From positions 5,149 to 69,148 of the forward strand of contig NIVC01002634.1 of assembly GCA_002269645.1 (NCBI GenBank): a DNA stretch of 64,000 bases. The letters are read 5' to 3'. The translations under genes were made by a program, and so were the position numbers. This stretch comes from Macrostomum lignano. Its lineage: Eukaryota. A model generated the notes under the pieces. The model did not search any database. It was not told the origin of the DNA and saw nothing but the letters and a program-made list of their open reading frames with translations. Below, one piece after another: positions 19,319 through 61,404 of this stretch. Numbering within the stretch: position 1 is the first letter of the stretch; each line of letters begins with the position of its first letter.

Positions 19319-23062
<3,744 letters not shown>

Positions 23063-26532: not shown

Positions 26533-29365
26533 CTTCCTGTTCTCAGTCACACTTCCTGTTCTCTGTCACTCCCTTCCTGTTCTCTGTCACTCCCTTCCTG
26601 TTCTCTTTCACTCCCTTCCTGTTCTCTGTCACTTTTTCCTGTTCTCTGTCACTCTTTTCCTGTTCTCTGTCACTCTCTTCCTGTTCTTTGTCACTCCCTT
26701 CCTGTTCTCTGTCACTCTCTTCTTGTTCTCTGTCACTCTTCCTGTTCTCTGTCACTTTTTCCTGTTCTCTGTCACTCTTTTCCTGTTCTCTGTCACTCCC
26801 TTCCTGTTCTCTGTCACTCTCTTCCTGTTCTCTGTCACTCCCTTCCTTTTCTCTGTCACTCTCTTCATGTGCTCTGTCATTCTCTTCCTGTTCTCTGTCG
26901 CTCCCTTCCTGTTCTCTGTCACTCCCTTCCTGTTCTCACTCCCTTCCTGTTCTCTGTCACTCTCTGCCTGTTCGTTCTCTGTCACTCTTTTTCAGTTCTC
27001 TGTCACACTTCCTGTTCTCTGTCACTCTCTTCCTGTTGAATGTTACTTTCTTCCTGTTTAAAGACGGCCTTGTTTTCCTTTTTAGAATGGATTAGAAAAC
27101 AGAAAGGAAGTGACAGAGAACAGGAAGAGAGTGACAAAAAACAGAAAGAGAGTGACAGACAACAGGAAGGGAGTGACAGAGAACAGGAAGAGAGTGACAG
27201 AGAACAGGAAGAGAGTGACAGAGAACAGGAAGGGAGTGACAGAGAACAGAAAGGGAGTGAAAACGTGTGTCACATCTGTCGCTAAGCAGAGATTGTCACA
27301 CATGTGTCACAGTGGCAGCACTAATTTTCCTGTTTATTAACTAAGCAGACTTTTCAAAAGCAACAAAGTTGTTTTCTCTAACTAGCAGAGGTAGCCCAGC
27401 TGAGTGAGGCATTGATGGAATAAAATGGGATTTTTTGTGCCTTGCATTTGTCTGCCGAAATCCTGATTACTTTTAACGAAAGAAAAATTGTTTGGCTCTC
27501 TGCACCTGCACCTGAATAATTGCTGTTATGCTACTCCGCTTGGGATGCCTACACGATGGGGAGAAATCGTTGCTGCGCGTGGCGAAGGAAATAGCGACTG
27601 GTAGTTTTTGTGGAATTGTGCAACTCTGCTTCTGGTAGTTCTGAGGGGAATTGTGCAACTGTGCTTCTGGTAGTTCTGAAAGGAATTGTGCAGCTCTGCT
27701 TCTGATAGTACTGAGGAGTATTGTACACCTCTGCTTCTGGTAGTTCTGAGGGGAATGGTGCAACTCTGCTTCTGGTAGTTCTGAGGGGAATTGTGCAACT
27801 CTGCTTCTGGTAGTTCTGAGAGGAATTGTGCAACTTTGCTTCTGGTAGTTCTGAGGGGAATTGTGCAACTCTGCTTCTGGTAGTTCTGAGAGGAATTGTG
27901 CAACTTTGCTTCTGTTAGTTCTGAGGGGAATTGTGCAACTCTGCTTCTGGTAGTTCTGAGAGGAACTGAGCAACTCTGCTTCTGGTAGTTCTGAGGGGAA
28001 TTGTGGAGCTGGGCTTCTGGTAGTTCTGAGGGGAATTGTGCAACTCTGCTTCTGGTAGTTCTGAAGAGTTCATTCCTCATTCTCTTCCTGTTCTCAGTCA
28101 CACTTCCTGTTCTCTGTCACTCCCTTCCTGTTCTCTGTCACTCCCTTCCTGTTCTCTTTCACTCCCTTCCTGTTCTCTGTCACTTTTTCCTGTTCTCTGT
28201 CACTCTTTTCCTGTTCTCTGTCACTCTCTTCCTGTTCTTTGTCACTCCCTTCCTGTTCTCTGTCACTCTCTTCTTGTTCTCTGTCGCTCTTTCTGTTCTC
28301 TGTCACTTTTTCCTGTTCTCTGTCACTCTTTTCCTGTTCTCTGTCACTCCCTTCCTGTTCTCTGTCACTCTCTTCCTGTTCTCTGTCACTCCCTTCCTTT
28401 TCTCTGTCACTCTCTTCATGTGCTCTGTCATTCTCTTCCTGTTCTCTGTCGCTCCCTTCCTGTTCTCTGTCACTCCCTTCCTTTTCTCACTCCCTTTCTG
28501 TTCTCTGTCACTCTCTTCCTGTTCGTTCTCTGTCACTCTTTTTCAGTTCTCTGTCACACTTCCTGTTCTCTGTCACTCTCTTCCTGTTGAATGTTACTTT
28601 CTTCCTGTTTAAAGACGGCCTTGTTTTCTTTTTTAGAATGGATTAGAAAACAGAAAGGAAGTGACAGAGAACAGGAAGAGAGTGACAGAAAACAGAAATA
28701 GAGTGACAGAGAACAGAAAAAGAGTGACAGAGAACAGGAAGAGAGTGACAGAGAACAGAAAAGGAGCGACAGAGAACAGGAAGAGAGTGACAGAGAACAG
28801 GAAGGGAGTGACAGAGAACGGAAAGGGAGTGACAGAGAAAGGGAAGAGAGTGACAGAGAACAGGAAGGGAGTGACAGAGAACAGGAAGAGAGTGACAGAG
28901 AACAGGAAGAGAGTGACAGAGAACAGGATGGGAGCGACAGAGAACAGGAGGGGAGTGACAGAGAACGGAAAGGAAGCGTCAGAGAACAGGAAAAGAGTGA
29001 CAGAGAACAGGAAGAGAGTGACAGAGAACAGGAAGGGAGTGACAGAGAGCAGGAAGAGAATGACGGAGAATATGAAGAGAGTGACAGAGAACAGGGAGAG
29101 AGTGACAGAGAACAGAAAAAGAGTGACAGAGAACAGGAAGGGAGTGACAGAGAACAAGAAGAGAGTGACAGAGAACAGGAAGAGAGTGACAGAGAACAGG
29201 AAGAGAGTGACAGAGAACAGGAAGGGAGTGACAGAGAGCAGGAAGAGAATGACGGAGAATATGAAGAGAGTGACAGAGAACAGGGAGAGAGTGACAGAGA
29301 ACAGAAAGGGAGCGACAGAGAACAGGAAGGGAGTGACAGAGAACAGGAAGAGAGTGACAGAGATT

Positions 29366-30142
29366 TGCAGTTCAACGTACTAGGCGTCTCGTCAGCAGCA
29401 CCTGCCGGGCTTGGTTGGTTCAGGGAGGGCTGAGTTAGCCTCTCGTAGGCTTGAGGTTGGGCTTTAGTGGGGTCTCAGTCAGACCAGTACAAGCAGATTC
29501 AGTGTACGCAAAGGGCACTTAGTTAGACACTGACGCACACGGGAGCTTAGTGGATTCTCCGCAGATAAGAAGCCTCCTTGACGGAAACAAGGGGAGAGGG
29601 GTCCTATTTATAGCCGGGAGACACCCACGCACAAGACCTCGTGACTCGTTCTATTTTTAGAACTGACGTCACTTGGGGTCTCGGGCAGGGTCTCAGTGCG
29701 CGCAAGACCTCGTGACTCGTTCTATTTTTAGAACTGACGTCACTTGAGGTCTCCGGCCAGAGTACACGCGGCTGTGACTCAGTTGCTATTTTTAGCAACA
29801 TGAGTCACTCCTCTCCTTAGAGAAGGGAGAGGTCCGAAAGCACGTGATTCTCCCGGTAAACAGGGCCAACGAGTGCAGTAAACATGTTTACTGCACTTTA
29901 AGACTCCAAGAACGCAAGATCTGTCATGTGAGCAAAACGGGACGGGAACGAAACAGAAACAGCCTACAGCAGAGAAGCTGAGGGCTGAGAACAGAGACGC
30001 AGAAGGGCAGAACAGGCCAAGGACAGCAACAGACGGACAAGGGGGCGGGAAGCTGACCAGCGGCAGACAGCAACCCAGGGCGAGGGCGAGGGAGACTGCT
30101 GACAAAGGGGCCCGCCAAACACTAAACTAGCGGCTCACTACA
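29366..30142 (-). mobile_element. Solo LTR, 777 bp, no TSD
   Basis: Minus strand TGTAG...CTGCA termini; TATAAATA at 29612-29605; 71-bp tandem duplication, each copy with TGACGTCA (29664, 29735); flanks are two different satellites. Confidence 0.65.
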
Positions 30143-30554
30143 CAATCCTCACTTTGAGTTCCCTAATCCTTACTTTGAGTTCCCTAATCCTTACTTTGAG
30201 TTCCCTAATCCTCACTTTTAGTTCCCTATTCCTCACTTTGAGTTCCCCTAATCCTCACTTTTAGTTCCCTAATCCTCACTTTGAGTTCCCTAATCCTCAC
30301 TTTGAGTTCCCTAATCCTCCCTTTGAGTTCCCTAATCCTCCCTTTTAGTCCTCCTAATCCTCACTTTGAGTTCCCTTATCCCACTTTGAGTTCTCTAATC
30401 CTCAATATGAGTTTCCCAATTCTCACTTTGAGTTTTATAACACTCATTTCGAGTTTAAGAAGCTCAATTCGAATCCCTAAAGTAAATTCTAGTTAAAAAT
30501 TATATTTAAGTACATCTCAGTCCCACACTTGCAGCCTCATCAATTCAGCCTCAC

Positions 30555-30715
30555 TTCAACATCCGTCTCTGCCCGACGTTCTCGGCGCCGCGGCACGGAA
30601 CCCCGCCGGGTCCGGTGACCAGACGAGCCTCCAGGCCCTTCTCGGCTGCCCGGGTCTCAAACTCCACCAGCTCATCAGGACAGAGGTTTCGAAATCCCGG
30701 CATGCAGATGGCGGA
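30555..30715 (-). CDS. lin-28: Lin-28 copy B, second CSD exon
   Basis: Splice sites intact; 2 substitutions versus 9313-9473, both synonymous (CTG>TTG, CTT>CTG). Confidence 0.8.
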
Positions 30716-31588
30716 CTTGATGGAGATTCAAGAGGGTTGCTGTTACATTTGGTGGAACTCAAAGATGTACCAGTGAAATAGCAACCAAAACTACTCAAGA
30801 AAACCACATAGCGACTAAACCTACTGAAAGAAACTCCATTGCAACCAAAACTACTCAAGAAAACCACATAGCGACTAAACCTACTGAAAGAAACTCCATT
30901 GCAACCAAAACTACTCAAGAAAACCACATAGCGACTAAATCTACTGAAAGAAACTCCATTGCAACCAAAACTACTCAAGAAAACCACATAGCGACTAAAC
31001 CTACTGAAAGAAACTCCATTGCAACCAAAACTACTCAAGAAAACCACATAGCGACTAAACCTACTGAAAGAAACTCCATTGCAACCAAAACTACTCAAGA
31101 AAACCACATAGCGACTAAACCTACTGAAAGAAACTCCATTGCAACCAAAACTACTCAAGAAAACCACATAGCGACTAAATCTACTGAAAGAAACTCCATT
31201 GCAACCAAAACTACTCAAGAAAACCACATAGCGACTAAACCTACTGAAAGAAACTCCATTGCAACCAAACCTACTCAAAAAAACCACATAGCGACTAAAC
31301 CTACTGAAAGAAACTCCATTGCAACCAAAACTACTCAAGGAAGCCCCATAGCAACCATACCTAGTCACGGCTCAAGAAAACAACAGCAATCAAACCTAAT
31401 AAAAAACTACTCAAGGAAAGCCATAACAAGAAAAAACCGACTCAAGAAAACCCCATAGCAACCAAACTTTCTCAAACTTTCCCATAGCAATCAAACCTAA
31501 TACAAAAAACTGAAACGCCACGACAACCAAAACTACTCAACGAAACCCCATAGCAACCGAGGGCTACTCAAGCCCCGCCGCAGCACAC

Positions 31589-31719
31589 CTGATGCACGAA
31601 AACATTCCGACCTCGGTCGTCCGGCAGGATGAAGCCGAAGCCTCGAGCGACATCGAACCACTTGACCTTGCCCGGCCGCCTCACGGAATTAAGTATTTGC
31701 GCCGAAAGTTGAAAATCAT
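31589..31719 (-). CDS. lin-28: Lin-28 copy B, first CSD exon
   Basis: Splice sites intact; 3 substitutions versus 10095-10225, all synonymous (GCC>GCG, AGA>CGA, GTC>GTT). Confidence 0.8.
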
Positions 31720-34373
31720 CTACAAAGACGCGAGTGCACAGATCTGTGGCGATTTCAGGCAATAATTTGGTGTAATAAAATCTGTTTTGTCGGCTACAGA
31801 GCACTTACCGAAATTCACCTTAATACTTCCGCTCTTTTGCATTGCTGCTAACAACAGATTATAATTTAGATGCAAAAAACCCGGTTGTTTTCTTATTCTA
31901 AAAAAGAAAACCAGGCCGTCTTTTATAGGCAAGCTGCAGCGCTTAAAGACCAATTACCTCAGAACAATTATCCAGTCGCGCTCAGAAGATAGGATTTTTC
32001 CAAACAAATTCCACACTTAATTATCAGGCTCAAGAATATTTTTTAGCAGAGCTTCACCACCTTAAGAAGCACAGCTGCACAATTCCCATCAGAACTACCA
32101 GAAGCACAGCTGCACAACTCCCCTCAGAACTACCAAAAGCACAGCTGCAAAATTCCCATCAGAACTACCAGAAGCAGAGTTGCACAACTCCCCTCAGAAC
32201 TACCAGAAGCAGAGTTGCACAATTTCCCTCAGAGCTACCAGAAGCAGAGTTGCACAATTTCCCTCAGAGCTACCAGAAGCAGAGTTGCACAATACTCCTC
32301 AGAACTACCAGAAGCAGAGTTGCACAATACTCCTCAGAACTACCAGAAGCAGAGTTGCAGAATTCCCCTCAGAAATATGAAAAGCAGAGTTGCACAATTC
32401 CCCTCAGAACTACCAGAAGCAGAGTTGCACAATTTTCCTCAGAACTACCAGAAGCAGAGTTGCACAATTCTCCTCAGAACTACCAGAAGCACAGCTGCAC
32501 AATTCCCCTCAGAACTACCAGAAGCAGAGCTGCACAATTCCCCTCAGAACTACCAGAAGCAGAGTTGCACAATTCTCCTCAGAAATACCAGAAGCAGAGT
32601 TGCACAATTCTCCTCAGAACTACCAGAAGCAGAGCTGCACAATTCCCCTCAGAACTACCAGAAGCACAGCTGCACAATTCCCCTCAGAACTACCAGAAGC
32701 AGAGCTGCACAATTCCCCTCAGAACTACCAGAAGCAGAATTGCACAATTCCCCTCAGAACTACCAGAAGCAGAATTGCACAATTCCCCTCAGAACTACCA
32801 GAAGCAGAATTGCACAATTCCCCTCAGAACTACCAGAAGCAGAGTTGCACAATTCCCCTCAGAACTACCAGAAGCACAGTTGCACAATTCCCCTCAGAAC
32901 TACCAGAAGCAGAGTTGCACAATTCCACAAAAACTACCAGTCGCTATTTTCCTTCGCCACGCGCAGCAACGATTTCTCCCCATTATGTAGGCATCCCAAG
33001 CGGAGTAGCATAACAGCAATTATCGTATTCAGTGCAATTATTCAGGTGCAGGTGCGGAGAGCCAAACAATTTTTCTTTTGTCAAAAGCAATCAGGATTTC
33101 GGCAGACAAATGCAAGGCACAAAAAATCCCATTTTATTCCATCAATGCCTCACTCAGCTGGGCTACCTCTGCTAGTTAGAGAAAATAACTTTGTTGCTTT
33201 TGCAAAGTCTGCTTAGTTAATAAACAGGAAATTTAGTGCTGCCACTGTGACACATGTGTGACAATCTCTGCTTAGCGACAGATGTGACACACGTTTTCAC
33301 TCCCTTTCTGTTCTCTGTCACTCCCTTCCTGTTCTCTGTCACTCTCTTCCTGTTCTCTGTCACTCCCTTTCTGTTCTCTGTCACTCTCCCTGTTCTCTGT
33401 CACTCCCTTCCTGTTCTCTGTCACTCTCTTCCTGTTCTCTGTCACTCCCTTCCTGTTCTCTGTCACTCTCTTCCTGTTCTCTGTCGCTCCCTTTCTGTTC
33501 TCTGTCACTCTCCCTGTTCTCTGTCACTCCCTTCCTGTTCTCCGTCATTCCCTTCCTGTTCTCTGTCACTCTCTTCCTGTTCTCTGTCACTCCCTTCCTG
33601 TTCTCTGTCACTCCCTTCCTGTTCTCTGTCACTCTCTTCCTGTTCTCTGTCACTCCCTTCCTGTTCTCTGTCACTCTCTTCATGTTCTCTGTCATTCTCT
33701 TCCTGTTCTCTGTCACTCCCTTCCTGTTCTCTGTCGCTCCCTTCCTGTTCTCTGTCACTCCCTTCCTGTTCTCTGTCGCTCCCTTCCTGTTCTCTGTCAC
33801 TCTCTTCCTGTTCTCCGTCATTCCCTTCCTGTTCTCTGTCACTCTCTTCCTGTTCTCTGTCACTCCCTTCCTGTTCTCTGTCACTCCCTTCCTGTTCTCT
33901 GTCACTCTCTTCCTGTTCTCTGTCACTCCCTTCCTGTTCTCTGTCACTCTCTTCATGTTCTCTGTCATTCTCTTCCTGTTCTCTGTCACTCCCTTCCTGT
34001 TCTCTGTCGCTCCCTTCCTGTTCTCTGTCACTCCCTTCCTGTTCTCTGTCGCTCCCTTCCTGTTCTCTGTCACTCCCTTCCTGTTCTCTGTCACTTCCTT
34101 CCTGTTCTCTGTCACTCTCTTCCTGTTCTCTGTCACTCTCTTCCTATTCTCTGACTGTTTTATCCATGCTATCCCATCATGGCTGTTATATTCTATCCAC
34201 CCCTTATCAATTAGTGGCATGGTTTAAGAAAATAAAAGGCGAAAGTCGCAATAGCGAAGAAAGCAATGTTTTTCATCCAGAAACGTCTCAAAATTGGGAC
34301 ATTGCACCATTCAAACTGAGCTAAAGCTAATTATTCATTTTTATTGACTTATTCAATTAGTTCATTCACTATA

Positions 34374-34559: not shown

Positions 34560-34855
34560 CTAGAGAAATCTGTCAGTAAAATATAATTTACGAATACTAC
34601 TTACTAAACTAAGTAATAAGGCCGAATTGAAGGCTCGATTTTTTGCACTAAATAACCAAGCAGCCCTCACCTTCATCATAACTTGAAAGAATAGTTAGGA
34701 ATGCCTTTTGCCTACATCTATTGTTTGACGATAAGCAGATATCATACATGTATTCAGCCTACTAAAAATTTGCGATTAAAACGTTATCAAGGCCAAGAAT
34801 TGTCCCAGACTCACTTCTACGCTCCAGAGTCATTCCAGAGTTGTTACAGGTACAA

Positions 34856-34893
<38 letters not shown>

Positions 34894-35089
34894 GCAACAA
34901 CACCCACCGGACTCTACGTTCGGTCTACAACCTTGTTGTAGCTCCTACTTGGCGCCGCGTTTTTGTCGCGGAGGGGAAACACGCCCAATGGGGGTGTACG
35001 AAGAGCGCCATAACCCGGACACTGCGTCCAGCGAGCGTGATTGTACTGGAAGAGGAGCCCGTATCGGTTTTAACACCGGGGGAGCCAAG

Positions 35090-35158
35090 TATCCGGCCCG
35101 CTACCTCCCCGCTCTTCTGTTGCTCAGGGCCGGCGATGTGGAGACCAACCCGGGGCCT
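35090..35158 (+). other. 2A/StopGo ribosome-skipping peptide YPARYLPALLLLRAGDVETNPG|P
   Basis: Exact D(V/I)ExNPGP (35135-35158) preceded by a Leu-rich helix, upstream of the PHD-like fingers and APE. Confidence 0.88.
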
Positions 35159-37864
35159 GCCAACAGCTGCGGATACGTCAGCTGCGGCCGCCCTCTGCGT
35201 GGCAAGTTCCTCACCTGTGCGAGATGTAACAGCCGCTTCCATCTGCAGAAGGACTGCTCCGGGTTGAGTCGCTGGGCCGCGAACAAGGCCGCGGACGCCC
35301 AGGAATGGCACTGCGCCAATTGCGTGATCAGACCCACCACCCAGACAGACTTGTCGTCCTCTGACCAATCGTCCACCTCTACCTGCCAGCCCACGGAAGA
35401 GCACGCCACCCGCAGGCAAGCCCTGCTCAACCGTATCCGGCAAGAGAAACCTAAATGCAATCATTGTCGGAAACCGATGCGCGTCAGCTCCACCATCGCC
35501 TGCTGCAATGCCTGTGAAGGCTTCTTCCACAACGCCTGCACGCAAGCCTCGCGCGACCAGATCAAAAAAGAAATCAGTCGCGGGCTTTGGAGATGCGGTC
35601 ATTGCACTGAAGCCGCCTGCCTCCAAGGCCCGCCCTCCCCTGAGGACCCTGACCCCACTCCTGCTGGGGGGAGCCACCCGGAAGAGGGGTGGGACTGCAA
35701 GAAACCCGAGCTCAAAATCATTCAATGGAACGCGGACGGGATCAGCAACAAAATGGGGGAGCTTGAGGACCTCGCATCTCGGCTTCAGGCCGACGTTATT
35801 GCGGTTCAAGAGTCGAAGCTCACCTCCTTCAACAAAACCCCCCGCATCCCGGGTTTCAGCACATTCGCAAGGACCGTAGAACCGCCCGCTGCGACCCGAA
35901 CGTAAAAGGCGGCGGCCTGCTCTTCTTTATCCGGCAAGGCATCCCGTTCAATAAACTCCAAGGATGGTCTGGAGGAACCACCGAAGGCTGTAGAATATCG
36001 ATCAGCACCTCGGCCAGACAAAAACTTGTCATCGCCAACATTTACCGCCCCCCCCATCCGGCGCGTGGAAGGCGAAGATCACCGTGAGCACCCCAGTGTC
36101 GATTCCTGGCTCAGATGCTTTCACAGGGAAATCCTGCTTGGTGACCTAGCAGGATGGGTTGGTGATCGGAGCCGAGCTCGGTGAGCGGTTTTCCGCTCAG
36201 AACACACCACACACACTGCCTGGGGCAGCGATCCCAATCAAGGACCTGAAGGTGCAGCACAAGCTCAGTGCCTGGTCGACCGGTGCAACTCCGTGGACTA
36301 CCGCATCCTGAACTCAGGGGAACACACCTGCGTTGACAGGCGCACCGGACGGACTAGTGCCCCCGATCTCACCATCGCTAGCCAATCTGTCGCCGACCTC
36401 TGTAAATGGCAACCGCTCACCGAGCTCGGCTCCGATCACCAACCCATCCTGGTGACCGTCCGGGAATCCCGCGAAACCTCGAAAATCAATGACGGCTCCA
36501 TCAAGAAACAGATTGCCAGGCTCTGCTCGGGCATGCTTAAAGCAGTCAAAGCTGCTATCCCGCTCAAAAAAGTCTCTGCCAAAAACAAGCCATACTGGGA
36601 TGAAGAACTTACCGAAATTCGCGACACTCGGAACCGGCTTAGGGAATCTGGCGCCCATCCTGGCGAGTGGCTCGAAAAAAGTCACGAACTGTCCAAACTC
36701 TGTGCCATTAAGAAAGCCGAATTCTGGAAGGAGTATATCAAGAAAATGTCCGACTCTGCCGACCCAAAACAAGTCTGGAGGACCAATAAGTGCCTCAGCA
36801 ACGGCAAGCAACAAGCTCCTCCCAACGAATCTCTCATTGTTGACGGTCGAGAACTGCGCACCGACAAGAAGAAGGCCAACGCCTTTGGCCGCTATTACCA
36901 AAACATCAGCACTCTGAAACACTCGGCGGCAGACCGCAAGGTCAAAGTGGCCACATCCCGTCGCCTGGCCCAATACTCCACCGACGACGACCTTTACTGC
37001 CGTGACTTCACCCCTGGTGAGCTGGAACGGGCCATTGGCAAACTTGACCCCAGCAAAAAATGCGGTCCCGACGAAATCGAAGCTGCCTTCTTCATCCACC
37101 AGCCGGACTCTTGGATGACGGCCTGGCTGGCCGTCTTCAATCGTTGCTGGCGTACCGGACACTGCCCTGGAGTCTGGAAAAAGGCCGTTATCGTCCCTCT
37201 GCCAAAAGACGGAAAGGACCCCAAAGACCGCGGTAGTTACAGGCCTGTCAGCCTCACCTCCGTCTGCGGGAAGACCCTCGAACGGCTTATCCTCGATCGC
37301 CTCTATCGCTGGCTCGAGCTTCACAACATCATTCAGCCCTGGCAGGCCGGTTTTCAACGCAGTCGCGGCTGTGAAGAGCAAATCGCCCGCCTCGTTCAGT
37401 CTATTCAAGATGGCTGGGAGAAACGCCCGCACCTGAAAACCGTGGCCGTCATCATCGACTGCTCTCGCGCTTTCGACCGTGTTTGGCGCGCTCGCCTTAT
37501 TGGTCGCATGATGGATGAAGGCGTCCCTGCCTGTATGGTGCGTTGGTTCACCAGCTTTCTAGAAGGCAGGCAGATCGCTGTGCGGATCGGCTCCTCGCTT
37601 GGGAAATGGCGCAGACTGAGGGAAGGCGTCCCCCAGGGCGCCGTCAGCTCGCCTGCCCTTTTCCTCCTCTATGTTAACAAGTGGTCCGGCCACACCATGC
37701 CCCTCGTCGACTACAGTGGCTATGCAGACGACCTTGCCCTCTGGAGCACGGGCCGGAACCTCCCGGAAATCCAGGCTCGCCTCCAATCCGCCCTGCAACT
37801 TGTCGAGGAATGGGCCGCTCATCTGCGCATCGACATCAACCCCTCAAAAACTGAGGCATGCCTC

Positions 37865-38220
37865 AGGGGGCCGTAGCCCAGCGGTAGCGCAGCTGCTCTG
37901 GTGTGCCAGCGACCCAGGCTCGATTCCAAGTGCAGTCACATTAATTTGGGACTGAATTGGAATCTCGGCTTGGCTCTGCTCGTGCAATTAACGGCCTTGA
38001 GAGCCAACCGCCCAAGGCGCAGTGAAGTGTACATGACTAAATATAAAGTTAGGGCCGCAGTACACTCCTGTGTGAGTGTGTGCCTGCGTACGTATCCGCG
38101 CGCTTGTATGCCTGCTCAGGGGAGTCGGCGGAATGGGCAGTAATGCCTCTCGCCGGTTGTGTGCCCATGTCGCTTAAAGTGTGCCAGGGTGCACACAACC
38201 CCCCTGCCTCTAAAAAAAAA
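37865..38220 (+). mobile_element. tRNA-headed SINE with a LOA-type 3' structure and A10 tail
   Basis: 12-bp TSD GAGGCATGCCTC (37853-37864, 38221-38232); box A TAGCCCAGCGG 37874-37884; box B GGCTCGATTCC 37917-37927; removing it restores KTEACLFSRD in the Ingi RT frame. Confidence 0.9.
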
Positions 38221-39787
38221 GAGGCATGCCTCTTCTCTCGTGACAGATCTGACCGTCAACGAAACCCCAGCCTTACCCTCCGGGGCCAACAGATTCTTTT
38301 CAAGCAGGAGATTAAGTTTCTCGGAATCTGGATTGACCAAGGTCTGCTATTCGAAAAGCAAACTGACTCCGTCAGGGAGAAAATGTTTCGCCGAGCTGCC
38401 ATTCTCCGTGCCCTAGCCCACCGTGAATGGGGCTGGGATCGCAAGCTACTGCTGCGAGTCTACCGGGCTCTTGTGGAATCCGTCGTGTGCCACGCCGCCG
38501 CGGCTTGGACGCCCTGGCTATCTGCGACCCGTCTCAACGCCATCGACCGTGCCCAGCGCGAGGCCCTCCGGGTTGTCACTGGTCTCCCTCGCTCGACACC
38601 GGTTGAGGCCATCTACTTTGAGTCGGGAATCCTTCCCATCAGCCTCGAAGCCCGCCGAAGATCGCTACTTGCGGTTGAGAAAGCGCTCCGCAGACCCCCC
38701 CCCCCACCCCCGACGACCCCTTCTGGCAGCTTTGCGAGCGCCGCCAGGACACCCGGCTTTCTGCCAACCGTGGCCTCCGCGAACAAGCTAGACGAATCAC
38801 CGATGAGCTCCTTGGCGGACATTGCCTTGCTAACAGCCACATCCGGCTCCCACCCTGGAACTCTTTGGCCGACGCCGGAGTGCGCATGTTCACTAAGCTG
38901 CTGTTCGAGCCACTTGAAACCGACGCCGTCCAGGCGGTCCAAGCCACCACGACCGCGCGCTGCCCGAACGCCGCCACTTACTTCACCGACGGATCCGTCT
39001 CGGGTGGCGTTAAAAACGGAGGCGCGGCCTGGATTCTCTTGAGCCAGGACGGCTCTATCAGCCGGAGCGGGCGAGTGGCCGCGGGCCGCTGGTGCAGCTC
39101 CTTTGAGGCTGAACTCATCGCCATCTTCCAGGCGCTAAGCGACATCACTGCCAACCCCCCGAAAGAGGCTGCCATTCTCACCGACAGCCAGAGCGCCATC
39201 GCGGTTCTAAAATCCGATCGTCCATCCACTAACCCGCTCGTGGAGAGCGTTAAGAATGCCTTTACACCGCCGCCCGTCGTTCGAAGATCATCCTGCAGTG
39301 GGTGCCCGGGCACGCCGGAATCCCCGGAAACGAACTTGTGGATGCCGAGGCCAAACTAGCGGCCACGCTGCCTCAGGAACATGTCGGCATCACCCTGGAT
39401 TCGGCGAGGGCCCGCATCCGAGGGGCTGTTAATTACTCGCCCAACATGACAGGCCACCTGTTTGAGGTCTATGGCCAAAAGATTACGATGCATGAGAGCC
39501 CGCACAGACAACAGGTCCTGGTCTCGCAGGTCAGCCCCAGCAGCTAATCGCCGGGCACTGTCCTGCATCGACCTACTACCGCAACCGCATTAGCATTGAG
39601 GTCGGGGGCAACTGCCGTCTCTGCGCGGAAGAGGTTGATCAGTACCACCTCCTCAACTGCCCGGCCCTGGACGTCCAACGCCGTACTCACTGCATTACCG
39701 AAATGTGTCAACTCGCTCGCTCAGACGCAGTGGCGCTTCTCCTAGGGGCCATCGGTTGGTGTCCCCTTTAGGAGAGGCTCACCGCAT

Positions 39788-39985
39788 TCAACAACAACAA
39801 AAGCAACAACAACAACAACAAAATACGCGACCCAGCATGCACAGTCACAGTTAGAGCAGGGCACGTCAGATGGCGCGCCGCAGAGCCTGGGAGCGAATAA
39901 AGTCCGCTCCGTTGGCAGTGTCGGGCGCCCCAGCGTCGCACAGCAGGCAGTCCACGTATCGGCGGGTTCGGGCCTGACCCCGCCT
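39788..39985 (-). mobile_element. RTE 3' end (RRGQARTRRYVDCLLCDAG...ALRRAI*, 3' UTR, (TTG)n tail), inverted relative to the RTE body
   Basis: Minus-strand translation continues in frame from ...LTLQGPFR at 47376, sharing AGG. Confidence 0.85.
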
Positions 39986-41819
39986 TCTTCGCCGGCATCG
40001 TGAACGCGCCCGCGTCGCCGCTGCCCGCTAGCTTTGCGCTCCCACTGGACACGCCGCTCCCAGCTGAGGAGGATATCTGCACCAGACCAGTCACCACGCA
40101 GGACGTTGTGCTGTACGCGCGGAAAACATCAGGCGGCAAGGCGCTCGGCCCCGACGAAGTCCCGGTCGAAGCGCTGCGGCTCCGCTGTGTGGCCTCCCAG
40201 GTCACAGGCGTCATGAACCGCGTGCCCGCCGGCGCTCCTGCGCCTACCGAGTGGACCGTCGCGCACATCGTGCCGATCCCGATGAAGGCAGGGACAACGC
40301 GGAAAGAAGACCACCGCGGGATCTCGCTGATGTCCTGCACCGCGAAGCTCTTCAACCGGCTGCTGCTCGATCGTCTGCAGTCGGTGCTGGACCCGTACCT
40401 GCGGTACGAGCAGAACGGATTCCGGCCGCAACGCGGTACAGTGACACAGATCCTCGCACTCCGCCGTGTCATCGAGGAGGCGCGCATCCGCCAGTCTACG
40501 CTGATCATTGTCTTCGTTGACTTTCGAAAGGCGTTTGACTCAGTGTTGAGAGCCGCGCTTCCCTTTGTCCTTCGAGCCTAGCGGGTACCCCAGCAGCTAA
40601 TCGACGCTGTCATGGTGCTATATTGCGATACTCGAGCTGCTGTGGTGACGGGGGACGGCCTGTCTGACCTGTTCGATACTTCATCAGGAGTTCTGCACGG
40701 CGACACGCTAGCTCCGTTCCTCTTCGTGCTGCTGCTGGACTGGGTGCTTCGGACCTCACTCCCCACGGCTAATGACGGCTTCCTGCTGCGCAGACGCATC
40801 GATCGCCGCCACGGCGGAAAGCGCCTAGGCGTGCTTGGCTACGCCGACGACCTCGCCCTCCTGTCCTCGTCCGTTGAAGGCGCCCAGCGCCAGATCGACA
40901 GGCTGGTCGAGGTGGCATCGAGCGTCGGTCTGATCGTCAACACGCTGAAGACCGAGGTGCTGACTGTGCCGGCCGACATCCCAGCGGACCTGACGTGCCG
41001 CGGCGCAGAAGGGCAGACGACCAGGCTTGCATGCTGCAAGCGGTTCACCTACCTCGGCGGTCTGGTGCCCCACGTGGAAGAGGACCTCCGGCGGCGCAGA
41101 GGACTTGCCTGGGCGGCCTTTCGTTCGATCCGAGCCGTCCTCCAGTCCGAAGCGCTGCCCGACCGCCAGAGGGCTCGGCTGTGGCAGGCGGTGGTCGAAA
41201 CCGTCCTGCTCTACAACGCCGAGACGTGGACGCTGACGGCTACGCTAGAGCGGTAGCTGGACTCGGCGCACTCAGGGCTGCTCCGAGAGCTGACGAGAGT
41301 GCACGCGAAGGCGTATTCAGCATGCCAGTGAAGTATGAGACAGACCAGGCCTTTGGGCTAAGGTCTGCGATGCTTCACGCCTGCCCCTATCTTTAGCAGG
41401 TCAAGGCTGGTGGGAGGTCTGCACCCTCTATTTGCCTCTGGCAGCCGCAGACCCCCCCCCCACGCTGTCTCGCAAGTCGACCCAGGGTACTCGTCCCCGC
41501 GTGTGTTCAAGGCAGACCCTAGGGCTGCTGGACAGACTGGGCTCCGGCGCTGGCGACCCTATCCAGTGGCTTCGGCCGAATTTGGGTATGCGGGTCTGGC
41601 TCGCCGACCTGCAGGCCGTGGTACTGCTCAACGTACTCTCTAATGCCTAAGGTGTTGACCGTGCCGATGGGCTGGAAGGCCGGGGAGTAGTCCGGTCGCA
41701 AGCGGTCCCCCTCCTGGTGTCGGGCCAGCCTTGAGGGTTCGATTGGCCTACTGCCCGGTCAGGTGGAGCGGCCGGGTGGGTACCGCGCCCCTTTGAGGGT
41801 AGCCCACCAACCTTTTATC

Positions 41820-43328
41820 ATGGCCTTCGAGCCGACTATGGATAAACAAGCTATTTCTAGGGACGGGGACCCTTCTAAACCCCAACCTCAGTCCGAAGGA
41901 CCGGCCGGCCCTGCTGGCAGATCCCAACCGACTGATTCAACTGTGGCAAAGGAAGGACCGGCTGGCTCTGCTGGCAGATCCGACCAGAGCTACCAAACTC
42001 AAAATACCCAAAGACCTGCCAGCTCCGCTGGTGGATCTAAGGGAACCGCGAGCTCTGAGCCTAAAGGACCGGCCAAATCTGGCAGATCCGATGAAGCTCA
42101 GCGGGCTCGGCTTGAGCGCAAACGCGCTAAACAACGCGCCAAAAGGCAGGCCAAGAAGGGAGCTGCGGGGGCCAAAGCGGCGGCGTCCACCATGGATGCT
42201 GAAGCGACTGGAGTCCCAAGGCAACCAGGCGGGCCGGCCGGTGGAAGCTCCAGTAGTTCAGCGGCGGCGCTCCCTGGAGCTGCTGCCGCGGCTGCTGAGG
42301 CCGAAACCACGGCGCAACAAATGGCCACTGCCAACAAGGAGGTTCCTTCGGGAGCTACCTTTGCGGCGAAGGCCAAGGCCAAAATCCCGGGAGTGATCAT
42401 CCAAGGTCGCGACCAGGACTGGACCACTGATCAGCTTCAAAAAGTGTGGAGTGCTGTTGACTCCTATCTGATTGAGCTGACTGTCGAGGAGGGAATCTCC
42501 ATCGGCATTGAGCGGATGGTGCTGCGAAGCACATTCGTTCTTATTGCTCCTAGCAGCGAGGAGGACGCTCGGCGGCTGCTCCAGCGGCTGCCGACGGTCT
42601 CCTTGGATGCTGACCTTGGCGGAGCTCTTTTTCTTCGCGAGGGCCAGCGTCCAAAGACGATACCCTACGTGGTTTTCGTCCCTGCTAAGAGCACCGCAGC
42701 TGGACCACCTGACGTTATCCGCCGGGTCCTACTGCGTCTGAACCCCGACCTCCCTGCTAGTGGACTGGTGTATCACCGCCGAGTCCGCAGGGGGGAGACG
42801 GGCAACTCAATTGTCCTCGGCCTTTCCAGCACTTGGGCGAGTCGGTACCCTAATGGATCCTCTTTCCAGCTGGGTGCCCTCAAGCTCAAGATGCGCCGAG
42901 GAAAGTCTGCCAAAGGGAAGGCTACTGCCAACCCCGGCATCTCCGGCAAGAGCGGGGCGCAGTCTAAGGCCCAAGGAAAGGCGCAAGCCGATCCCAAAGC
43001 CAAAGCTGTGTCTCGCCCCTCTGCTAGCAGCAGTTCGGCAACCGCGGTAACGGCTCCGGCCAAGCCCCGGGAACCAAATCTGCCAGTCGGAGAAGGAGTT
43101 GAGGACGAGGCCGGGTCTTCGGAATCCGAGCTCTCCTCGGCCACCCTGGTGGGGTCTGAAGGTAAAGATGCAGATGAGGAAGCTTCCTCCATCCTGTCGT
43201 CGGAGCCTGAGGACTCTGCTGGGGGGGCCGGTGGGGGTGAGGAGGCCATGGACGTCGACCAACTCCCATCTCCCAGTCAAGCCCCAGCGGCCTGGGACGA
43301 GGACGATCTGTTGTCCAAGTCTCCTTGA
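41820..43328 (+). CDS. ORF1 of family-3 element, open
   Basis: ATG at 41820; low-complexity N-terminus, basic stretch, globular core aligning with family-1 ORF1, acidic tail ending LLSKSP*. Confidence 0.8.
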   Translation: MAFEPTMDKQAISRDGDPSKPQPQSEGPAGPAGRSQPTDSTVAKEGPAGSAGRSDQSYQTQNTQRPASSAGGSKGTASSEPKGPAKSGRSDEAQRARLERKRAKQRAKRQAKKGAAGAKAAASTMDAEATGVPRQPGGPAGGSSSSSAAALPGAAAAAAEAETTAQQMATANKEVPSGATFAAKAKAKIPGVIIQGRDQDWTTDQLQKVWSAVDSYLIELTVEEGISIGIERMVLRSTFVLIAPSSEEDARRLLQRLPTVSLDADLGGALFLREGQRPKTIPYVVFVPAKSTAAGPPDVIRRVLLRLNPDLPASGLVYHRRVRRGETGNSIVLGLSSTWASRYPNGSSFQLGALKLKMRRGKSAKGKATANPGISGKSGAQSKAQGKAQADPKAKAVSRPSASSSSATAVTAPAKPREPNLPVGEGVEDEAGSSESELSSATLVGSEGKDADEEASSILSSEPEDSAGGAGGGEEAMDVDQLPSPSQAPAAWDEDDLLSKSP

Positions 43329-43367
43329 TGGCCCTGGGCTCTAGCCAGACATTGCATTTAATACAGT

Positions 43368-46300
43368 ATGACTAAGCTCCACGCTGCCAAAGGAGCGACA
43401 TTCTGTCTGCAAATAAATCTACAGCATTGCGTATCTGCGTCAGTAAATCTGATGAAGATTGCTGAGCTGTACAGGCCAGGCCTCATCCTGATCCAGGAAC
43501 CCTGGATGCGCAACGGTAAGTTGCCCAACATTCCCTCTGGCTACTCTGATTTTTATGTGTGTGGCCCGGGGAACAGCCGCCCTAGAGCGGCTATCCTCGC
43601 TGCTAGCCATCTCCAGGCTTGGCTGAGGACTGATCTCTCTGATGGAGACCTTTGCGTCATCCAATCTAATCATTTCTCTCCGCGTACGTGTCTTGTTGCC
43701 TCGGTTTATATCCCAGGCGACAGAGACCCTGCTCCCGAGAGTTTACTGCGCCTTGCGCAGTACTGCCAGTCCCAGAACGCTGAGCTGTGCTTAGGGGGCG
43801 ACCTCAACGCGCACCACAAGCACTGGGGCAGCAAAGATACCAACACTAGAGGAGAGGAGCTTCTGGCCCTCATCTCTAACACAAACCTCATGCTCTGCAA
43901 CCGCGGCAGCACTCCTACCTTTAATAATGGCAGATGGACCGAGGTCCTCGACGCCACACTCGTTACCCCAAGACTCTTTGACAGAGTTGAGGAGTGGAGA
44001 GTCTGGTCTGAGGAGCCCTCCCTGTCTGACCACTGCTTTATCGCCTTTAACATCGCGGACACTAAAACCCAGTCTCCGATCACTTGGAGGCGCAATATCC
44101 GCAACACTGATTGGGCGGCCTACAAGGCTGCCCTTGATCTGCACCTGCAGGAACTCACGGACTTACGTCCGATTGAGACCTGCGAGGATGTGGATCATAT
44201 GGCTGAGACGCTGACAGGTTGCATTATTGCAGCCTACGAAGCGGCTTGTCCTGCTCGCGCCTACAAAGGCAAGACCTCGGCGCCGTGGTGGAACCCGGAG
44301 CTGGGGAAACTCAGGCGGAAGGCCAAAAGCCTTCATCGCCGTGCCATGAAGACCGGAAACCCGGAGGACATGGAGCTTTTCCGGCAAGCCTCCCGCAATT
44401 TCAAATCTGAAGTGCGCAAGGCCAAGGAATGTAAGTGGCGCCAATTCTGCAATGAATTGGATCAAGACAGACCTACTTCTAGGCTTGTCAAGGCCCTTAC
44501 AATGGACAAAATGTCCAAATTAGCCATGATCAAAAAAGATGATGGCTCTCTTACTAAAGACCCTGAAGAAGTGCTTCAGCATATGCTTAGCACATTCTTC
44601 CCGAGGGTACCTACTGCTAGACCTGAGCCCAACCATTGGATGGATGGAGCCACCCTAGCGGCGGGCATTGTCACTGAAGACCTAATCGCACGTGCGGTCA
44701 GAACCTTCAAACCCTTCAAATCTCCTGGACCTGATGGTATCTACCCTGTTCTCCTTCGTGAAGCAGCCAAGATACCCTCGTTCCTGAGACTCACCCGCAA
44801 TCTTATGCGGGCCTCTATCCAGCTGGGATACGTTCCCAAATGCTGGACTGAAGCTCGAGTAGTCTTTATTCCCAAACCTGGGAAGGGTGACTACCAAAGC
44901 GTCAAGGCCTTCCGGCCTATTAGCTTAACGTCAGCAATGCTTAAGCTCACTGAGAGGCTTATTCTCTGGCGGCTGCTCTCCTGCGAGCTGACAGCGATGC
45001 CCCTCAGCAATAATCAGCACGCCTTCCGTACCGGGAGGTCGACTGACAGCGCCCTGCATGCGATTGTCGAGAAGATTGAACGGGCGGTACTGGGTGACGG
45101 TTACGCCCTGGCTCTCTTTCTTGACATTGTTGGCGCCTTCGACAACGTTATCTTTGAAGCGTTTCAGAGGGCCCTTCAAAATCGCAAAGCTCATGCTACC
45201 CTCATACGGTGGATCATGTACATGATCTCCAACCGTACGGTCACTGCCCAACTTCTTGGGAAACTGCCTCCACCAGAGTCTGTAAGGGTGGACCCCAAGG
45301 CGGAGTCCTCACCCCGACGCTCTGGAACCTGGTCATGGACGCTCTTCTGAGTGACTCCCGACCCGACCCCGTCTTCAAAGTCGGGTATGCTGATGACGTC
45401 ACGGCCATTGTGGCAGGACCGTCTCCCAGCACGCTCAGGGATCTGATGCAGAGCTTTATCCGCAAAGCAGAATCCTGGGCCAATGACAATGGTCTGGAAC
45501 TCTCTGAGCCCAAAACCGTTGCCATTATGTTTACCAGCAGACTACGCTGGAACATACGTCCTCTGCAGCTCTACGGCAGAGATATTGCCTTCGCGCACCA
45601 GACCAGATGTCTCGGGGTCACACTTGACCACCGGCTCAACTGGTCCTTCCACGTGAAAGCAAAAGCCAAGCGTGCCTCAGCCATCCTGGCCCAGCTCCGA
45701 CGAGCACTTGGCACTTCTTGGGGTCTATCCCCAAAGCGGCTTTGGTGGATCTATACTTCCGTAGTTAGACCTGCCATTACGTACGCCTCTGTCGTCTGAG
45801 TTAGCGCTACCCAGGTCAAAAGCCATGCAGACCTGCTTAACACGATCCAAGGCAGAGCGTGTAGGCTCATCTGCAACGCCACCAGGTCCACGCCCTTTGC
45901 TGGCATGGGGGCCTTCCTTAATCTACCGCCTCTTGACCTCTTCGTCAGGGGTGAGGCGGCTAGAACGATGCGGCGTCTAATTGATGCCGGCTTCAAATTC
46001 ATTTACATGAGAGCACCTGCTAAGCGGAACCTTGTCCCGCATAGCGACCTGTGCCTCAACTTTCTCAACGAGTGTCAGGCCAATCGCGTCTTCACCGATC
46101 GCATTGCCTCAACGCTCAACCTGAGACAGCGCTACTCCGTAGCTATCGACTCGCGCGATAACATCAATGACCAATGTAACCTTGGTGAGCTTCATTGCTA
46201 CACCGACGGTTCTAAGCAGTCAGCCAACACCGGCTTTGGTGTTGGAATCTTTCTGAACGGGAGGTCATCGCTACCCACGCTCAATACACTGGGGTCAACT

Positions 46301-47106
46301 CCAGTGTTTTCCAAAATGAAGTTCTGGCCATCAGCTCCTGCACTGCAGAGCTTCTCGCCACTGGCGTTACTGGTAAGAACATCATTTTCCATTCGGACAG
46401 CCAAGCTGCCTTGCACGCCATCAGTGGCTGCAGCACCAACTCTGCTACAGTCCTCGACTGTATCAAACTCCTCAACGTGTTGGGTTCCACCAACAAAATT
46501 ACCCTTAAGTGGGTTCCGGGGCATGTGGGGATCCGAGGAAATGAGTTGGCTGACACCCTTGCAAAAGTTGGTGCCTCCGGCTCCTCTCTCGGCCCCGAAC
46601 CCCTTGTCCCGATTCCTGGCTGTGTCATCGACTCGCGCATCAAAGCGTGGATCAGGACCCAGCACCGCTCGACTTGGGCGAACTGCACTACCTGCAGGCA
46701 ATCCAGAGGCGCTGTCCCTCAGCCCTCTCACCAGCTCCGGAAGCTCCTCTTGCGCCTCTCGCGCAGAGACATCCGGGCTGCCACCATGACCCTCTCTGGT
46801 CACGGCTGCTTCTCCAGGCACCAGTACCTGCAGGGCAACGCCACCAACGCCACCTGTAGTTTCTGCAACTCAGGTGACGAAACCGCTGAGCATTTCGTCA
46901 GCATCTGTCCCGCCTTCACGCGGGCCAGACTCACTTACCTCGGGCCACACACATCTATTACTGAAGCGTGCAAACCCGAAAACTTTAATCAGCTCATGCG
47001 CTACCTTCGGGCCACCCGCAGGGCTGAACTCTCCTTTCCAGAGAGCACTATAGCTGCTGGCGACACTGGGGGACCTCCCTGGGCGGCGCCAACCCTCCGT
47101 CCATAG
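43368..47106 (+). pseudogene. ORF2 of family-3 element (APE-RT-RNase H-CCHC), with frameshifts and a probable TGG>TGA nonsense at 45797
   Basis: Pieces 43368-45350, 45209-45799, 45905-about 46260 and 46411-47106 are collinear with families 1 and 2. Confidence 0.88.
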
Positions 47107-49140
47107 CGACGCGTCGGCCGTTCAGGGACTAGCGGAATGGGCGCCCGCGCCTTCCCGCTGTGTCCCCTCCGGGACAGCCCTGCAGCTAAGTCAAGTAAGT
47201 CAAGCTGACGAGAGCGTCGGGACCGAGGCCCTGTATGATCGGGCCAAGCTGCAGCGCCCGTCTATCATCCTGCGCCGGCGGTGACTTCAACTGGCGGGTT
47301 ACGTGATCCGGGCCTAGGGCTACTGCCCCAACCTGTTCAGGACGTCCTGCTGCTCACCTTGCAGGGTCCGTTCAGGTTGCTAAGGTAAAAACATTTTTTG
47401 TTTTATCGTATGCAAGTTTTTTATTAGTTTGAAAATGCAATACCCGAAGTATTTAGAGACAAATTGATTTTTAACTAGTATTATTGGTTCATTGAGTTTA
47501 ATTAAACCTATTTTTTTCATCTTAAAATTTAACTTGAACTGTCATAGATCATCCGAGGAATTCTAAATCTAGCAACTGGAATGACAACTAAAATATCAGC
47601 TATACAAGATGAGGCCAAGATTAGAGATTGCAAGCGTGCGACGTAAACACAGAGTATTTAAAAAAAAGGATCGTATTTCAAAGTATATTTCCGAAACAAT
47701 AACAAAAGCAGAGGAATGAAACGCGACACAAGAAGACGTTGAAATTATATCAATTTCTAGATGTAACAAGTAGGCACGAGTATTTCAAGCAAGCAAAGCA
47801 AGAGTAGATGGCTTATAAACTGTATTGAGAAACTGTAACAAAGAGTAAACAAAAAGAAACGAAAACTGCAAGCAAAATTCAGAAATGTCTGGCAAGCAAA
47901 GAAAGAACACAGCAATAAAACTAAATGAATCTCACTTTTGCCAGGCCAGTTACGCCAGTCTGGCTATACGCAAAATTGTTAGCGGGCACCACGCATCAAA
48001 ATCAATCTCTCGTCAACTTCCTCTTCACTTTGTTTGCTTTGTCTCAGCTTGATTGATCCGCTTTGTTAGCATCTTGGACATGCAATTAAAAAACCTGTTG
48101 ATGATCTCGCGGACCGGATCATGGCCAGCGGTGCAGTGTGTCCTACCATGCTACCAAATGGAAAGTCACCATGATCTGTCAGCACGAGGTCCATCACGAG
48201 ATAAAATGTCTCCCTTTGATTGGAAGATGCTGATTCTTCTTAGTGGCAATCTAAGTTGATGCGGTAAACAAAATCCTGTGTCTGTGGCAGTCGCAGTAAG
48301 CCTCATCTTGTATAAAAAAGTCCTCACCGCTACTTCAGTTGTCAATCCAGTAGGATTTAGAATTCCTTGGATCATCTGTTACAGATTTCAGTATAATTGT
48401 GAAGAGAATTTGGCCAGTTCTAGGGTGTAGAATATTGAAAATATTCTAGGGTGAAAAAAATCCGCGCATGTGTCGTCTATAATACAATGGTTGAGTTAGG
48501 CCCCTAGCTAGCCCCCTACTCGATTCTTGATTCATATAATTAAGTATATAAAAATATTAGGGCACTCTCTATTACCATTAAATCTTTCATTTTTCTTCCT
48601 TTGCTCAGCCCAGTCACTGATCCAACAATTGACAATGATCTGAAAAGTGAAGCATAGTTCATGTATATAACTTTGGCCGATCGGTTTTTACCGACGTTAA
48701 ACCGACGTTAAAATGTACATAGAGGGGGTGGGGTGGCTGCACACTGATGACAAATAGAATGGGGTGGCTGACAGGGAAATCCCCAAGGCCACCACAAGGC
48801 GCCTTACCAATAAAAAGCAAGGCAAACTAAGCAAGTGGCGTGATTCTGCATTGAGGACTCACTCGACACTCCTTACCTCTGTCTCTGTGCGCAACTACAT
48901 GTATATACTGTTTGCATTTAAATACATTGCCGACGTAATTTTTTTCGACGCTAACTTTTCATCTTTAAATACACTGCTGATGTAAGGGATAGCGACGTTC
49001 GCCAGCCGACTTTTGCGAGACGACGTTCGCCATCAGACGTTTGCCAGCCGACGTTTGCCAGCCGGACATTAGTGTGCGGCAATGGGTTAAAGAATTATGC
49101 CCTCTCTAGGCTTACATGTACTTGCATTTGAAAACTGCTA

Positions 49141-52100: not shown

Positions 52101-52224
52101 GTCCCCTGAGCGACGTCACTTCGATGGAAGTCATTGGTCGCCAGGGGCTAGCGGAATCGCGGTCTCCTCCGCCTCCTCGCTGCATCCGCCGGATGCCCCC
52201 TGCAGCTAAATCAAGTTAAGTCAA
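49141..52224 (+). mobile_element. Truncated, degenerate family-2 LOA copy split by a solo LTR
   Basis: 49141-49422 and 51411-52224 are near-identical to the rc of parts of 23640-25180; same 3' structure and TAAGTCAA-like tail. Confidence 0.88.
49423..51410 (-). mobile_element. About 2-kb solo LTR (Gypsy-like) or LTR-like insertion
   Basis: TGATG...CATCA termini, 4-bp TSD CAAA (49419-49422, 51411-51414); on the minus strand two AGCCAATCAG boxes (50792-50783, 50750-50741) upstream of TATTTAAA (50696-50689). Confidence 0.8.
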
Positions 52225-61330: not shown

Positions 61331-61404
61331 CTGGAATTGGTTGCGATTGTTTTTTTTTTGAATCAGTATTCAAATGGCTCTATACTGTACTGGGCACACT
61401 TGAC

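Follow-up and report, generated by a model that had tools for sequence, protein, structure and literature searches.

A Macrostomum SINE with pol III-type promoter boxes and a 3' tail probably descended from RNase-H-bearing LINEs

A 64,000-nucleotide stretch of Macrostomum lignano DNA (contig NIVC01002634.1, positions 5,149 to 69,148; hereafter the window) carries a 356-bp short interspersed nuclear element (SINE) whose 3' end folds into the same Y-shaped architecture as the 3' untranslated regions (UTRs) of several long interspersed nuclear elements (LINEs) in the same window. Our preferred explanation, to which we assign a probability of about 0.72, is that the insert represents an RNA polymerase III (pol III)-driven Macrostomum SINE, which consists of a tRNA-derived promoter head, a body, and a 3' module descended from the 3' UTR of a RNase-H-bearing LINE lineage in the same genome, and which is mobilised in trans by a related A-tailed LINE. 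Under this explanation, the internal A and B boxes would drive transcription of the SINE RNA, the tail of which would form a three-way junction made of a closing stem, a hairpin 1 with an AAU bulge and a GGGCN stem closed by a G.U pair, and a variable hairpin 2. A LINE of this lineage would supply the ORF2 protein, which would normally bind the element on the RNA of the LINE and would here bind the SINE RNA in trans. Target-primed reverse transcription would then copy the SINE and generate the 12-bp target-site duplication (TSD).

The insertion and the fold of its tail

The SINE lies in sense orientation within the reverse transcriptase (RT) domain of another LINE. The features of the insert and its site are listed here, where ORF denotes an open reading frame and APE an apurinic/apyrimidinic-type endonuclease.

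37865-38220, + strand: SINE, 356 bp, sense orientation, within the RT domain of the host LINE
37853-37864, no strand: left TSD, GAGGCATGCCTC, a perfect 12-bp palindrome
38221-38232, no strand: right TSD, exact second copy of GAGGCATGCCTC
36293-39042, + strand: host LINE ORF2, end of APE and then RT (Pfam RVT_1, Exo_endo_phos_2), interrupted by the SINE
37874-37884, + strand: box A-like sequence TAGCCCAGCGG, one mismatch to the consensus TRGCNNAGTGG, at +10 of the insert
37917-37927, + strand: box B-like sequence GGCTCGATTCC, one mismatch to the consensus GGTTCGANNCC, at +53 of the insert
38117-38206, + strand: Y-shaped, putatively LINE-derived tail, with closing stem CAGGGG (38117-38122) / CCCCUG (38201-38206)
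38127-38154, + strand: hairpin 1, GGCGG-AAU-GGGCA-GUAA-UGCCU-C-UCGCC, with the AAU bulge and a G.U pair closing stem 2
38155-38200, + strand: hairpin 2, 10-bp base GGUUGUGUGC / GCACACAACC and a long imperfect top
38207-38220, + strand: 3' terminus, CCUCU followed by A9

The insert is a clean retroposition into another LINE, because its TSD is exact and the host frame is restored upon excision. Removal of 37865-38232, which comprises the insert and one TSD copy, rejoins the host ORF as ...INPSKTEACLFSRD... inside Pfam RVT_1. The 12-mer GAGGCATGCCTC occurs exactly twice in the whole window, both times flanking the insert, where 0 occurrences are expected. A preliminary description of this DNA, made from the letters alone, had placed a SINE at these coordinates with a 12-bp TSD, and both are borne out. 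The SINE begins with AGGGGGCCGTAGCCCAGCGG and ends with CCCCCTGCCTCT followed by nine A, one fewer than the ten that had been counted previously. The retroposition was probably recent. No long ORF belonging to the SINE itself was found in 37865-38220, and BLAST revealed no second SINE copy within the window. As an aside on the palindromic TSD, the heptamer TGCCTCT is present both at the SINE end and at the junction of the TSD and its flank. This is probably a coincidence, given that a second SINE copy elsewhere in the genome retains CCTGCCTCT (see below). The host LINE spans approximately 34700-39825, with an ORF1 that contains a PHD finger, an ORF2 that contains RT, RNase H, and CCHC domains, and a (CAA)n-rich tail at its 3' terminus (39790-39825).

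Folding of the tail (38116-38210) gave a minimum free energy (MFE) of -49.2 kcal/mol, corresponding to z = -5.2, and 0 of 200 shuffled sequences reached this value. The Y-shape was retained when the complete SINE RNA was folded. The preliminary description had proposed that the tail has the helix order of the LINE 3' UTRs, with CGGCG/CGCCG as the first stem. The shared Y architecture was recovered, but stem 1 pairs as GGCGG/UCGCC both in the MFE fold and in the covariance model described below, not as CGGCG/CGCCG.

The Y-element in the tail and in the LINEs

Four LINEs in the window carry the Y-shaped element (Y-element) at their 3' ends.

17249-23163, + strand: LINE A, 13-bp TSD; Y-element at 23076-23142, followed by (AAGTCAAGT)n
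~26142-23639, - strand: LINE B, 5'-truncated; Y-element at 23658-23724, flanked by satellite
41300-47203, + strand: LINE C, 11-bp TSD GCTGACGAGAG; Y-element at 47122-47186
52141-52224, + strand: LINE D, decayed 3' end; Y-element at 52141-52206, with a 1-nt deletion in stem 2

The 3' ends of LINEs A-D share the form CAGGG(G)-nn-AGCGR-AAU-GGGCG-loop-CGCCU-nn-YCGCU-(small hairpin)-CCC(CC)UG-CAGCU-(AAGUCAAGU)n. The ORF2 of several LINEs in the window encodes, in order, Pfam Exo_endo_phos_2 (APE), RVT_1, and RNase_H, with a C-terminal CCHC. Partial matches of the LINE ORF2 to M. lignano proteins reach 56-63% identity, and the best match (76%) is to a Logan contig. No Pfam domain was detected in ORF1 of LINE A or LINE C, even at E <= 5.

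To compare the SINE with these elements, covariance model R1 was built from the 3' UTRs of LINEs A, B, and C and of one fetched locus (L001) only, with the SINE excluded, and was run with filters off over both strands of 95.6 kb. Scores were 72-83 bits for the training sequences and 52 bits for LINE D, which was not among them. The more distant L002, with 47% protein identity, gave 28.5 bits (E 0.002). The SINE tail (38116-38210) stood about level with this true LINE relative, with 26.0 bits and a nominal E of 0.005-0.007, and all 20 of the 20 modelled pairs in it are standard. The best noise match reached 15 bits (E about 1). Thus, a model trained on LINEs alone bears out the earlier proposal that the tail matches an element in the 3' UTRs of the window LINEs. 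Across the window and 10 loci, the matches of model R1 comprised the known LINE family and the SINE only, and BLAST of the SINE against the loci returned noise. The model did not match the 3' UTR of the host LINE, which is a different family from LINEs A-D. No Rfam family reached its gathering score anywhere in the window, the Y-element included, and 37800-38300 gave sub-threshold chance matches only.

Bulged hairpins of a generic kind, free of sequence constraints, are expected about 2.3 times per window by chance, and a descriptor of this kind was therefore dropped as a significance test. What makes the match significant is its full-model score, together with its location at the SINE 3' end.

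The resemblance extends to the letters themselves. In the GGCGG/UCGCC register, the SINE sequence CGGCGGAAUGGGCA aligns with the LINE sequence UAGCGGAAUGGGCG. The segment GCGGAAUGGGC in SINE hairpin 1 is identical at 11 of 11 nucleotides to LINEs B, C, and D and to L001, and the motifs CAGGGG, GCGGAAUGGGC, GCCU, and CCCCUGC are identical in the SINE and the LINEs and occur in the same order. Compensatory change separates the SINE from the LINEs at just two pairs: the basal pair of stem 1 is A-U in the LINEs and G-C in the SINE, and the top pair of stem 2 is G-C in the LINEs and A-U in the SINE. The true differences are confined to the terminus and to hairpin 2, the sequence of which is unrelated to hairpin 2 of the window LINEs. 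Because the loops, the bulge, the closing stem, and most of stem 1 have the same sequence in the SINE and the window LINEs, and because there are only two compensatory pairs, the simplest reading of these alignments is that the tail arose by ordinary descent from the 3' UTR of this LINE lineage and not by convergence on a shape. The preliminary description had instead suggested recognition by shape with different paired bases. That impression depended largely on the register chosen, and in the best register it gives way to near identity of sequence.

The element was also found in relatives of these LINEs among the fetched loci, which come from other samples. Identities are to LINE A ORF2 and positions are those of each locus.

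L001: Y-element 5881-5954; member of the training set of model R1
L002: 47% protein identity; (AAGTC)-type terminal repeat; Y-element 4289-4351
L003: 37% identity; (GGAACTT)n; Y-element ~5613-5678
L004: 38% identity; (AAT)n; Y-element 5577-5649
L008: 37% identity; A-rich terminus; hairpin 1 present at ~5387-5421
L010: 39% identity; (ATG)n; Y-element ~5092-5162

When folded independently by MFE, seven LINE 3' UTRs and the SINE tail adopted the same architecture, a module that consists of the closing stem, the AAU-bulged hairpin with its invariant G.U pair, and the variable hairpin. In the shared hairpin 1, the 3-nt AAU bulge separates a first 5-bp stem from a second one, the 5-bp GGGCN stem, which carries the loop; the return side has a further 1-2 nt. 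In a structure-fitted alignment of seven sequences, 92.8% of the cells pair, as compared to 44-64% with slid partners, and 10 of the 20 pairs show compensatory change; none of 500 shuffles reached the observed values. For hairpin 1, nine sequences were tabulated manually and checked against the raw sequences, as MAFFT misregistered the variable bulges and loops of L003, L004, L008, and L010. In this table 89 of 90 cells are paired, including those of LINEs at 37-39% identity (L003, L004, and L008), and neither the AU preceding stem 2 nor the G.U pair closing it varies in any of the nine sequences. The SINE retains every invariant position. In L010, which was compared by eye outside the nine-sequence table, the same AU precedes a GGGCC/GGCCU stem. 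The LINE relatives therefore keep the element with differing stem sequences, and each family has its own terminal repeat. The natural covariation that had been claimed from the SINE is thus present across LINE families at 37-47% protein identity, whereas between the SINE and the window LINEs it amounts to the two pairs given above.

We found no published description of the Y-element in the literature searched and none in Rfam. ORF1 of L003-L005 and L007-L010 contains Pfam DUF4780, and no informative literature on this ORF1 domain was found. A broader proposal, which we put forward tentatively and regard as doubtful, is that the Y-element might act as the module recognised by the RT throughout one lineage of RNase-H-bearing LINEs (LOA, perhaps, or a sister clade) in flatworms and other animals, that this SINE would be the first shown to have captured it, and that the LINEs and the SINE together would form a natural series of compensatory mutations.

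The surroundings of these LINEs are repetitive. LINE C is nested in an RT-bearing LINE fragment of another family (39900-41290 and beyond 47215), and LINEs A and B lie tail-to-tail inside a single 35-bp array. The window is rich in satellites, with arrays at 1-16900, 23164-23608, 26500-34200, and 58100-62700, and is dominated by units of 21, 35, 45, 60, 28, and 34 bp together with (TGTC)n. The G+C content falls sharply to 27-35% at 54000-58000, as compared to 45-63% elsewhere in the window. Overall, the window looks like heterochromatin that accumulates nested retroelements.

The SINE family and its candidate driver

Both strands of the window (128 kb) were scanned for promoter boxes, allowing at most one mismatch per box and a spacing of 30-60 nt. 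A single box A/box B pair was found in the whole window, at 37874/37917, as compared to 0.15 per window in shuffled sequences. The starts of box A and box B lie 43 nt apart, and both boxes are at positions like those in tRNA genes. Based on the boxes and their positions, a tRNA-derived pol III head is a reasonable description. Just past box B, the SINE body forms a hairpin (37914-37973) with a weak match to mir-788; at 19.5 bits, far below the Rfam gathering score of 90, this match was rejected as chance.

Further copies of the SINE were sought by comparing its translated frames (+0 for the head, +2 for the tail) with protein databases, so that the matches are at the amino-acid level only. The head was found in three M. 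lignano gene models with 72-90% identity over 31-36 residues, and the tail was found in a fourth.

P0056, A0A1I8GC36: HSBP1, SINE head segment
P0058, A0A1I8HHG8: C-type lectin, SINE head segment
P0060, A0A1I8GNL1: G-protein-coupled receptor (GPCR), SINE head segment
P0064, BOX15_Mlig026417g1: SINE tail and poly(A), then the C-terminus of a mariner-like transposase; starts MPLAGCVPMTLNLRQGAHNPPASKKKKK

The tail copy in P0064 starts in the hairpin-1 loop and extends over hairpin 2, the closing stem, and CCTCT into at least 15 A. It is read in the fusion as MPLAGC...PPASKKKKK, in which PPASKKKKK corresponds to CCTGCCTCT plus at least 15 A. This gene model has no LINE coding sequence upstream of the tail, and the insertion is in a mariner-like element. 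The four amino-acid differences from the SINE tail each correspond to a single-base change, and we infer that these changes sit at unpaired bases of hairpin 2 or convert G.U to G-C. An exact 23-mer from the SINE body had no match in JGI metagenome contigs. Taken together, the translated matches supply copies of both the head and the tail and indicate that the SINE is a multi-copy family in Macrostomum, with the CCUCU-poly(A) end belonging to the family. The SINE-derived pieces in at least four M. lignano gene models are probably annotation artefacts or exonisations.

The terminus also bears on which LINE drives the SINE. CCTCT-A9 at the SINE end contrasts with (AAGTCAAGT)n at the ends of the window LINEs, which suggests a driver outside the window. 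Terminal repeats vary freely in this LINE lineage, and A-rich or A-tailed relatives exist elsewhere (hairpin 1 is present in the A-rich L008, and L005 terminates in A10). The driver is therefore most likely a related A-tailed LINE family of the same genome. A poly(A)-tailed LINE partner had been anticipated in the preliminary description. The CCTCT-poly(A) end of the second copy, with its at least 15 A, fits that expectation, but no LINE with this end was found in the window or the 10 loci.

Several results weigh against the explanation that we prefer. Neither model R1 nor BLAST found a LINE with the hairpin 2 of the SINE or with a CCUCU-A(n) end in the window or the 10 LINE loci. The head and the tail are linked in one full-length copy only, the other copies being amino-acid fragments of gene models. 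The SINE had been called tRNA-headed, and the unique box pair at +10/+53 agrees with this, but the cloverleaf was seen neither by ARAGORN, which found no tRNA in register at its default or at relaxed 70-95% thresholds, nor by Rfam, in which no tRNA was found in the head at gathering score or at E <= 10; the head is thus at most tRNA-derived. The E-values of model R1 come from a shortened calibration and may be off by about fivefold. Lastly, the seven-sequence alignment was fitted to the structure and has seven rows, five of which are close relatives.

The main competing explanation is that the (AAGTCAAGT)n LINE families of the window (A, B, and C) are themselves the drivers, with an RT that requires only the Y-element and disregards the terminus. 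Hairpin 1, its bulge, and the closing stem are nearly identical in the SINE and in LINEs A-C. LINEs A and C, which have long ORFs and intact TSDs, look young, and the TSD lengths of the SINE (12 bp), LINE A (13 bp), and LINE C (11 bp) agree, as had been noted before. Nevertheless, the termini are wholly different and the second SINE copy keeps the CCTCT-poly(A) end, hairpin 2 is unrelated, and known stringent LINE/SINE pairs such as UnaL2/UnaSINE1 share the terminal repeat between the partners. We therefore consider this explanation unlikely.

Less probable again is mobilisation by an unrelated LINE of the relaxed, L1-like kind through the poly(A), in which case the Y-element would be a relic of an earlier partnership or would serve RNA stability. 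The pure A-run at the 3' end of two copies and the failure to find a partner LINE with the SINE tail in the window and the 10 loci would both be explained in this way. Against it, all 20 modelled pairs are intact in a tail of unusual stability (z = -5.2), the four changes inferred for the second copy avoid disrupting helices, and no L1-type LINE was seen in the window, the tested ORF2 copies all having RNase H and/or an R1-like APE.

It is also conceivable, with a still smaller likelihood, that the insert is a one-off chimera, formed when template switching fused a tRNA-like SINE or some pol III transcript to the 3' end of a LINE, so that no propagating family with this tail exists. This would account for the head and the tail occurring together in this copy only and for the amino-acid matches to the head, which end after about 40 residues. 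However, a second, independent M. lignano locus also carries the tail with its CCTCT-poly(A), the gene model there having no LINE coding sequence upstream, and the tail copies no LINE 3' end seen here, as its hairpin 2 and terminus are unique. Chance resemblance or convergent mimicry without common descent is hardly credible: BLAST alone is insignificant (27 nt, 81% identity, E = 2.7) and generic bulged hairpins are common, yet the full-model score stands 11 bits over the noise ceiling, a SINE bounded by TSDs has its 3' end precisely where the match falls, and the identical motifs keep their order.

Comparison with known systems

The RNA feature by which an RT chooses its template is unknown for most LINE clades outside L2, CR1, and R1. 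An element of 65-95 nt that is kept across LINEs at 37-47% protein identity with differing terminal repeats, and that is also found in a SINE, is likely to be a recognition signal. The comparison separates positions that are invariant and could be mutated (the AAU bulge, the G.U pair, and the closing stem) from a freely variable hairpin 2, and M. lignano, a transgenic flatworm model, gains a described SINE/LINE system. The general picture of SINE parasitism on LINEs is unchanged, and the conserved three-way-junction element of the LINE lineage is the more interesting by-product. No paper on a Macrostomum SINE or on a LOA-tailed SINE was found in the literature, with Repbase, Dfam, and SINEBase outside the comparison.

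In pairs of the UnaL2/UnaSINE1 type, the LINE belongs to the L2 or CR1 clade, the recognised structure is a single stem-loop, and a terminal repeat is common to the SINE and the LINE. The Macrostomum SINE resembles the stringent pairs (UnaL2/UnaSINE1, the tortoise pol III SINE and CR1, and the salmonid SINEs and RSg-1) in its tRNA-type pol III head, its structure-forming tail from a LINE 3' UTR, and its LINE-like TSDs. It differs in that the element is a three-way junction from a RNase-H-bearing LINE and in that the SINE terminus is unlike that of every LINE seen.

A second comparison is with SART1 and R1Bm of Bombyx, which reportedly need both a 3' UTR structure and poly(A) for retrotransposition and which, to our knowledge, are target-specific, are without RNase H, and have no known SINE. 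The likeness consists in membership of one broad group of APE-type LINEs and in the combination of a 3' UTR structure with an A tail, here in the SINE. Among solved structures, the endonuclease of the Macrostomum LINEs is nearest to that of TRAS1 (R1 clade), and a match to the L1 endonuclease is absent. Unlike SART1 and R1Bm, the Macrostomum LINEs carry RNase H.

LOA LINEs (Loa, Lian, Baggins, and Bilbo) combine APE, RT, and RNase H in their ORF2 and have TSDs about a dozen bp long, features that the Macrostomum LINEs share. The LOA label used in the preliminary description is a candidate assignment; the order APE-RT-RNase H-CCHC fits LOA but fits I, Nimb, Ingi, Tad1, and Outcast equally and is not diagnostic. 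The database matches of the LINE ORF2 are unnamed or automatically named 'R1DM-like'. A 5' ribozyme like that of hepatitis delta virus (HDV) has been reported for LOA LINEs (PMC5786205). Not every member of the LOA clade carries one, and comparison of the LINE C 5' UTR with Rfam gave no ribozyme match at E <= 10.

That LINE proteins recognise the secondary structure of the shared SINE/LINE tail is established (Ohshima 1996; Kajikawa & Okada 2002, as cited in PMC5786205). A close parallel to the Macrostomum SINE is provided by the Meta and V SINEs of bivalve molluscs, whose tails are homologous to the 3' UTRs of Nimb LINEs of the I superfamily over 35-61 bp with 72-95% identity (PMC11481361; Nishihara 2016 and Matetovici 2016, cited there). 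The preliminary description had presented a candidate new LINE-SINE partnership. Since I-superfamily tails are already described in molluscs, the category is not new even if the lineage proves to be LOA, and the borrowing of a LINE tail by a SINE is a known trick of which this is a new example. The two systems are alike in joining a lophotrochozoan tRNA-derived SINE to a short tail homologous to a RNase-H-bearing, I-like LINE, and they differ in that the host of the Macrostomum SINE is a flatworm.

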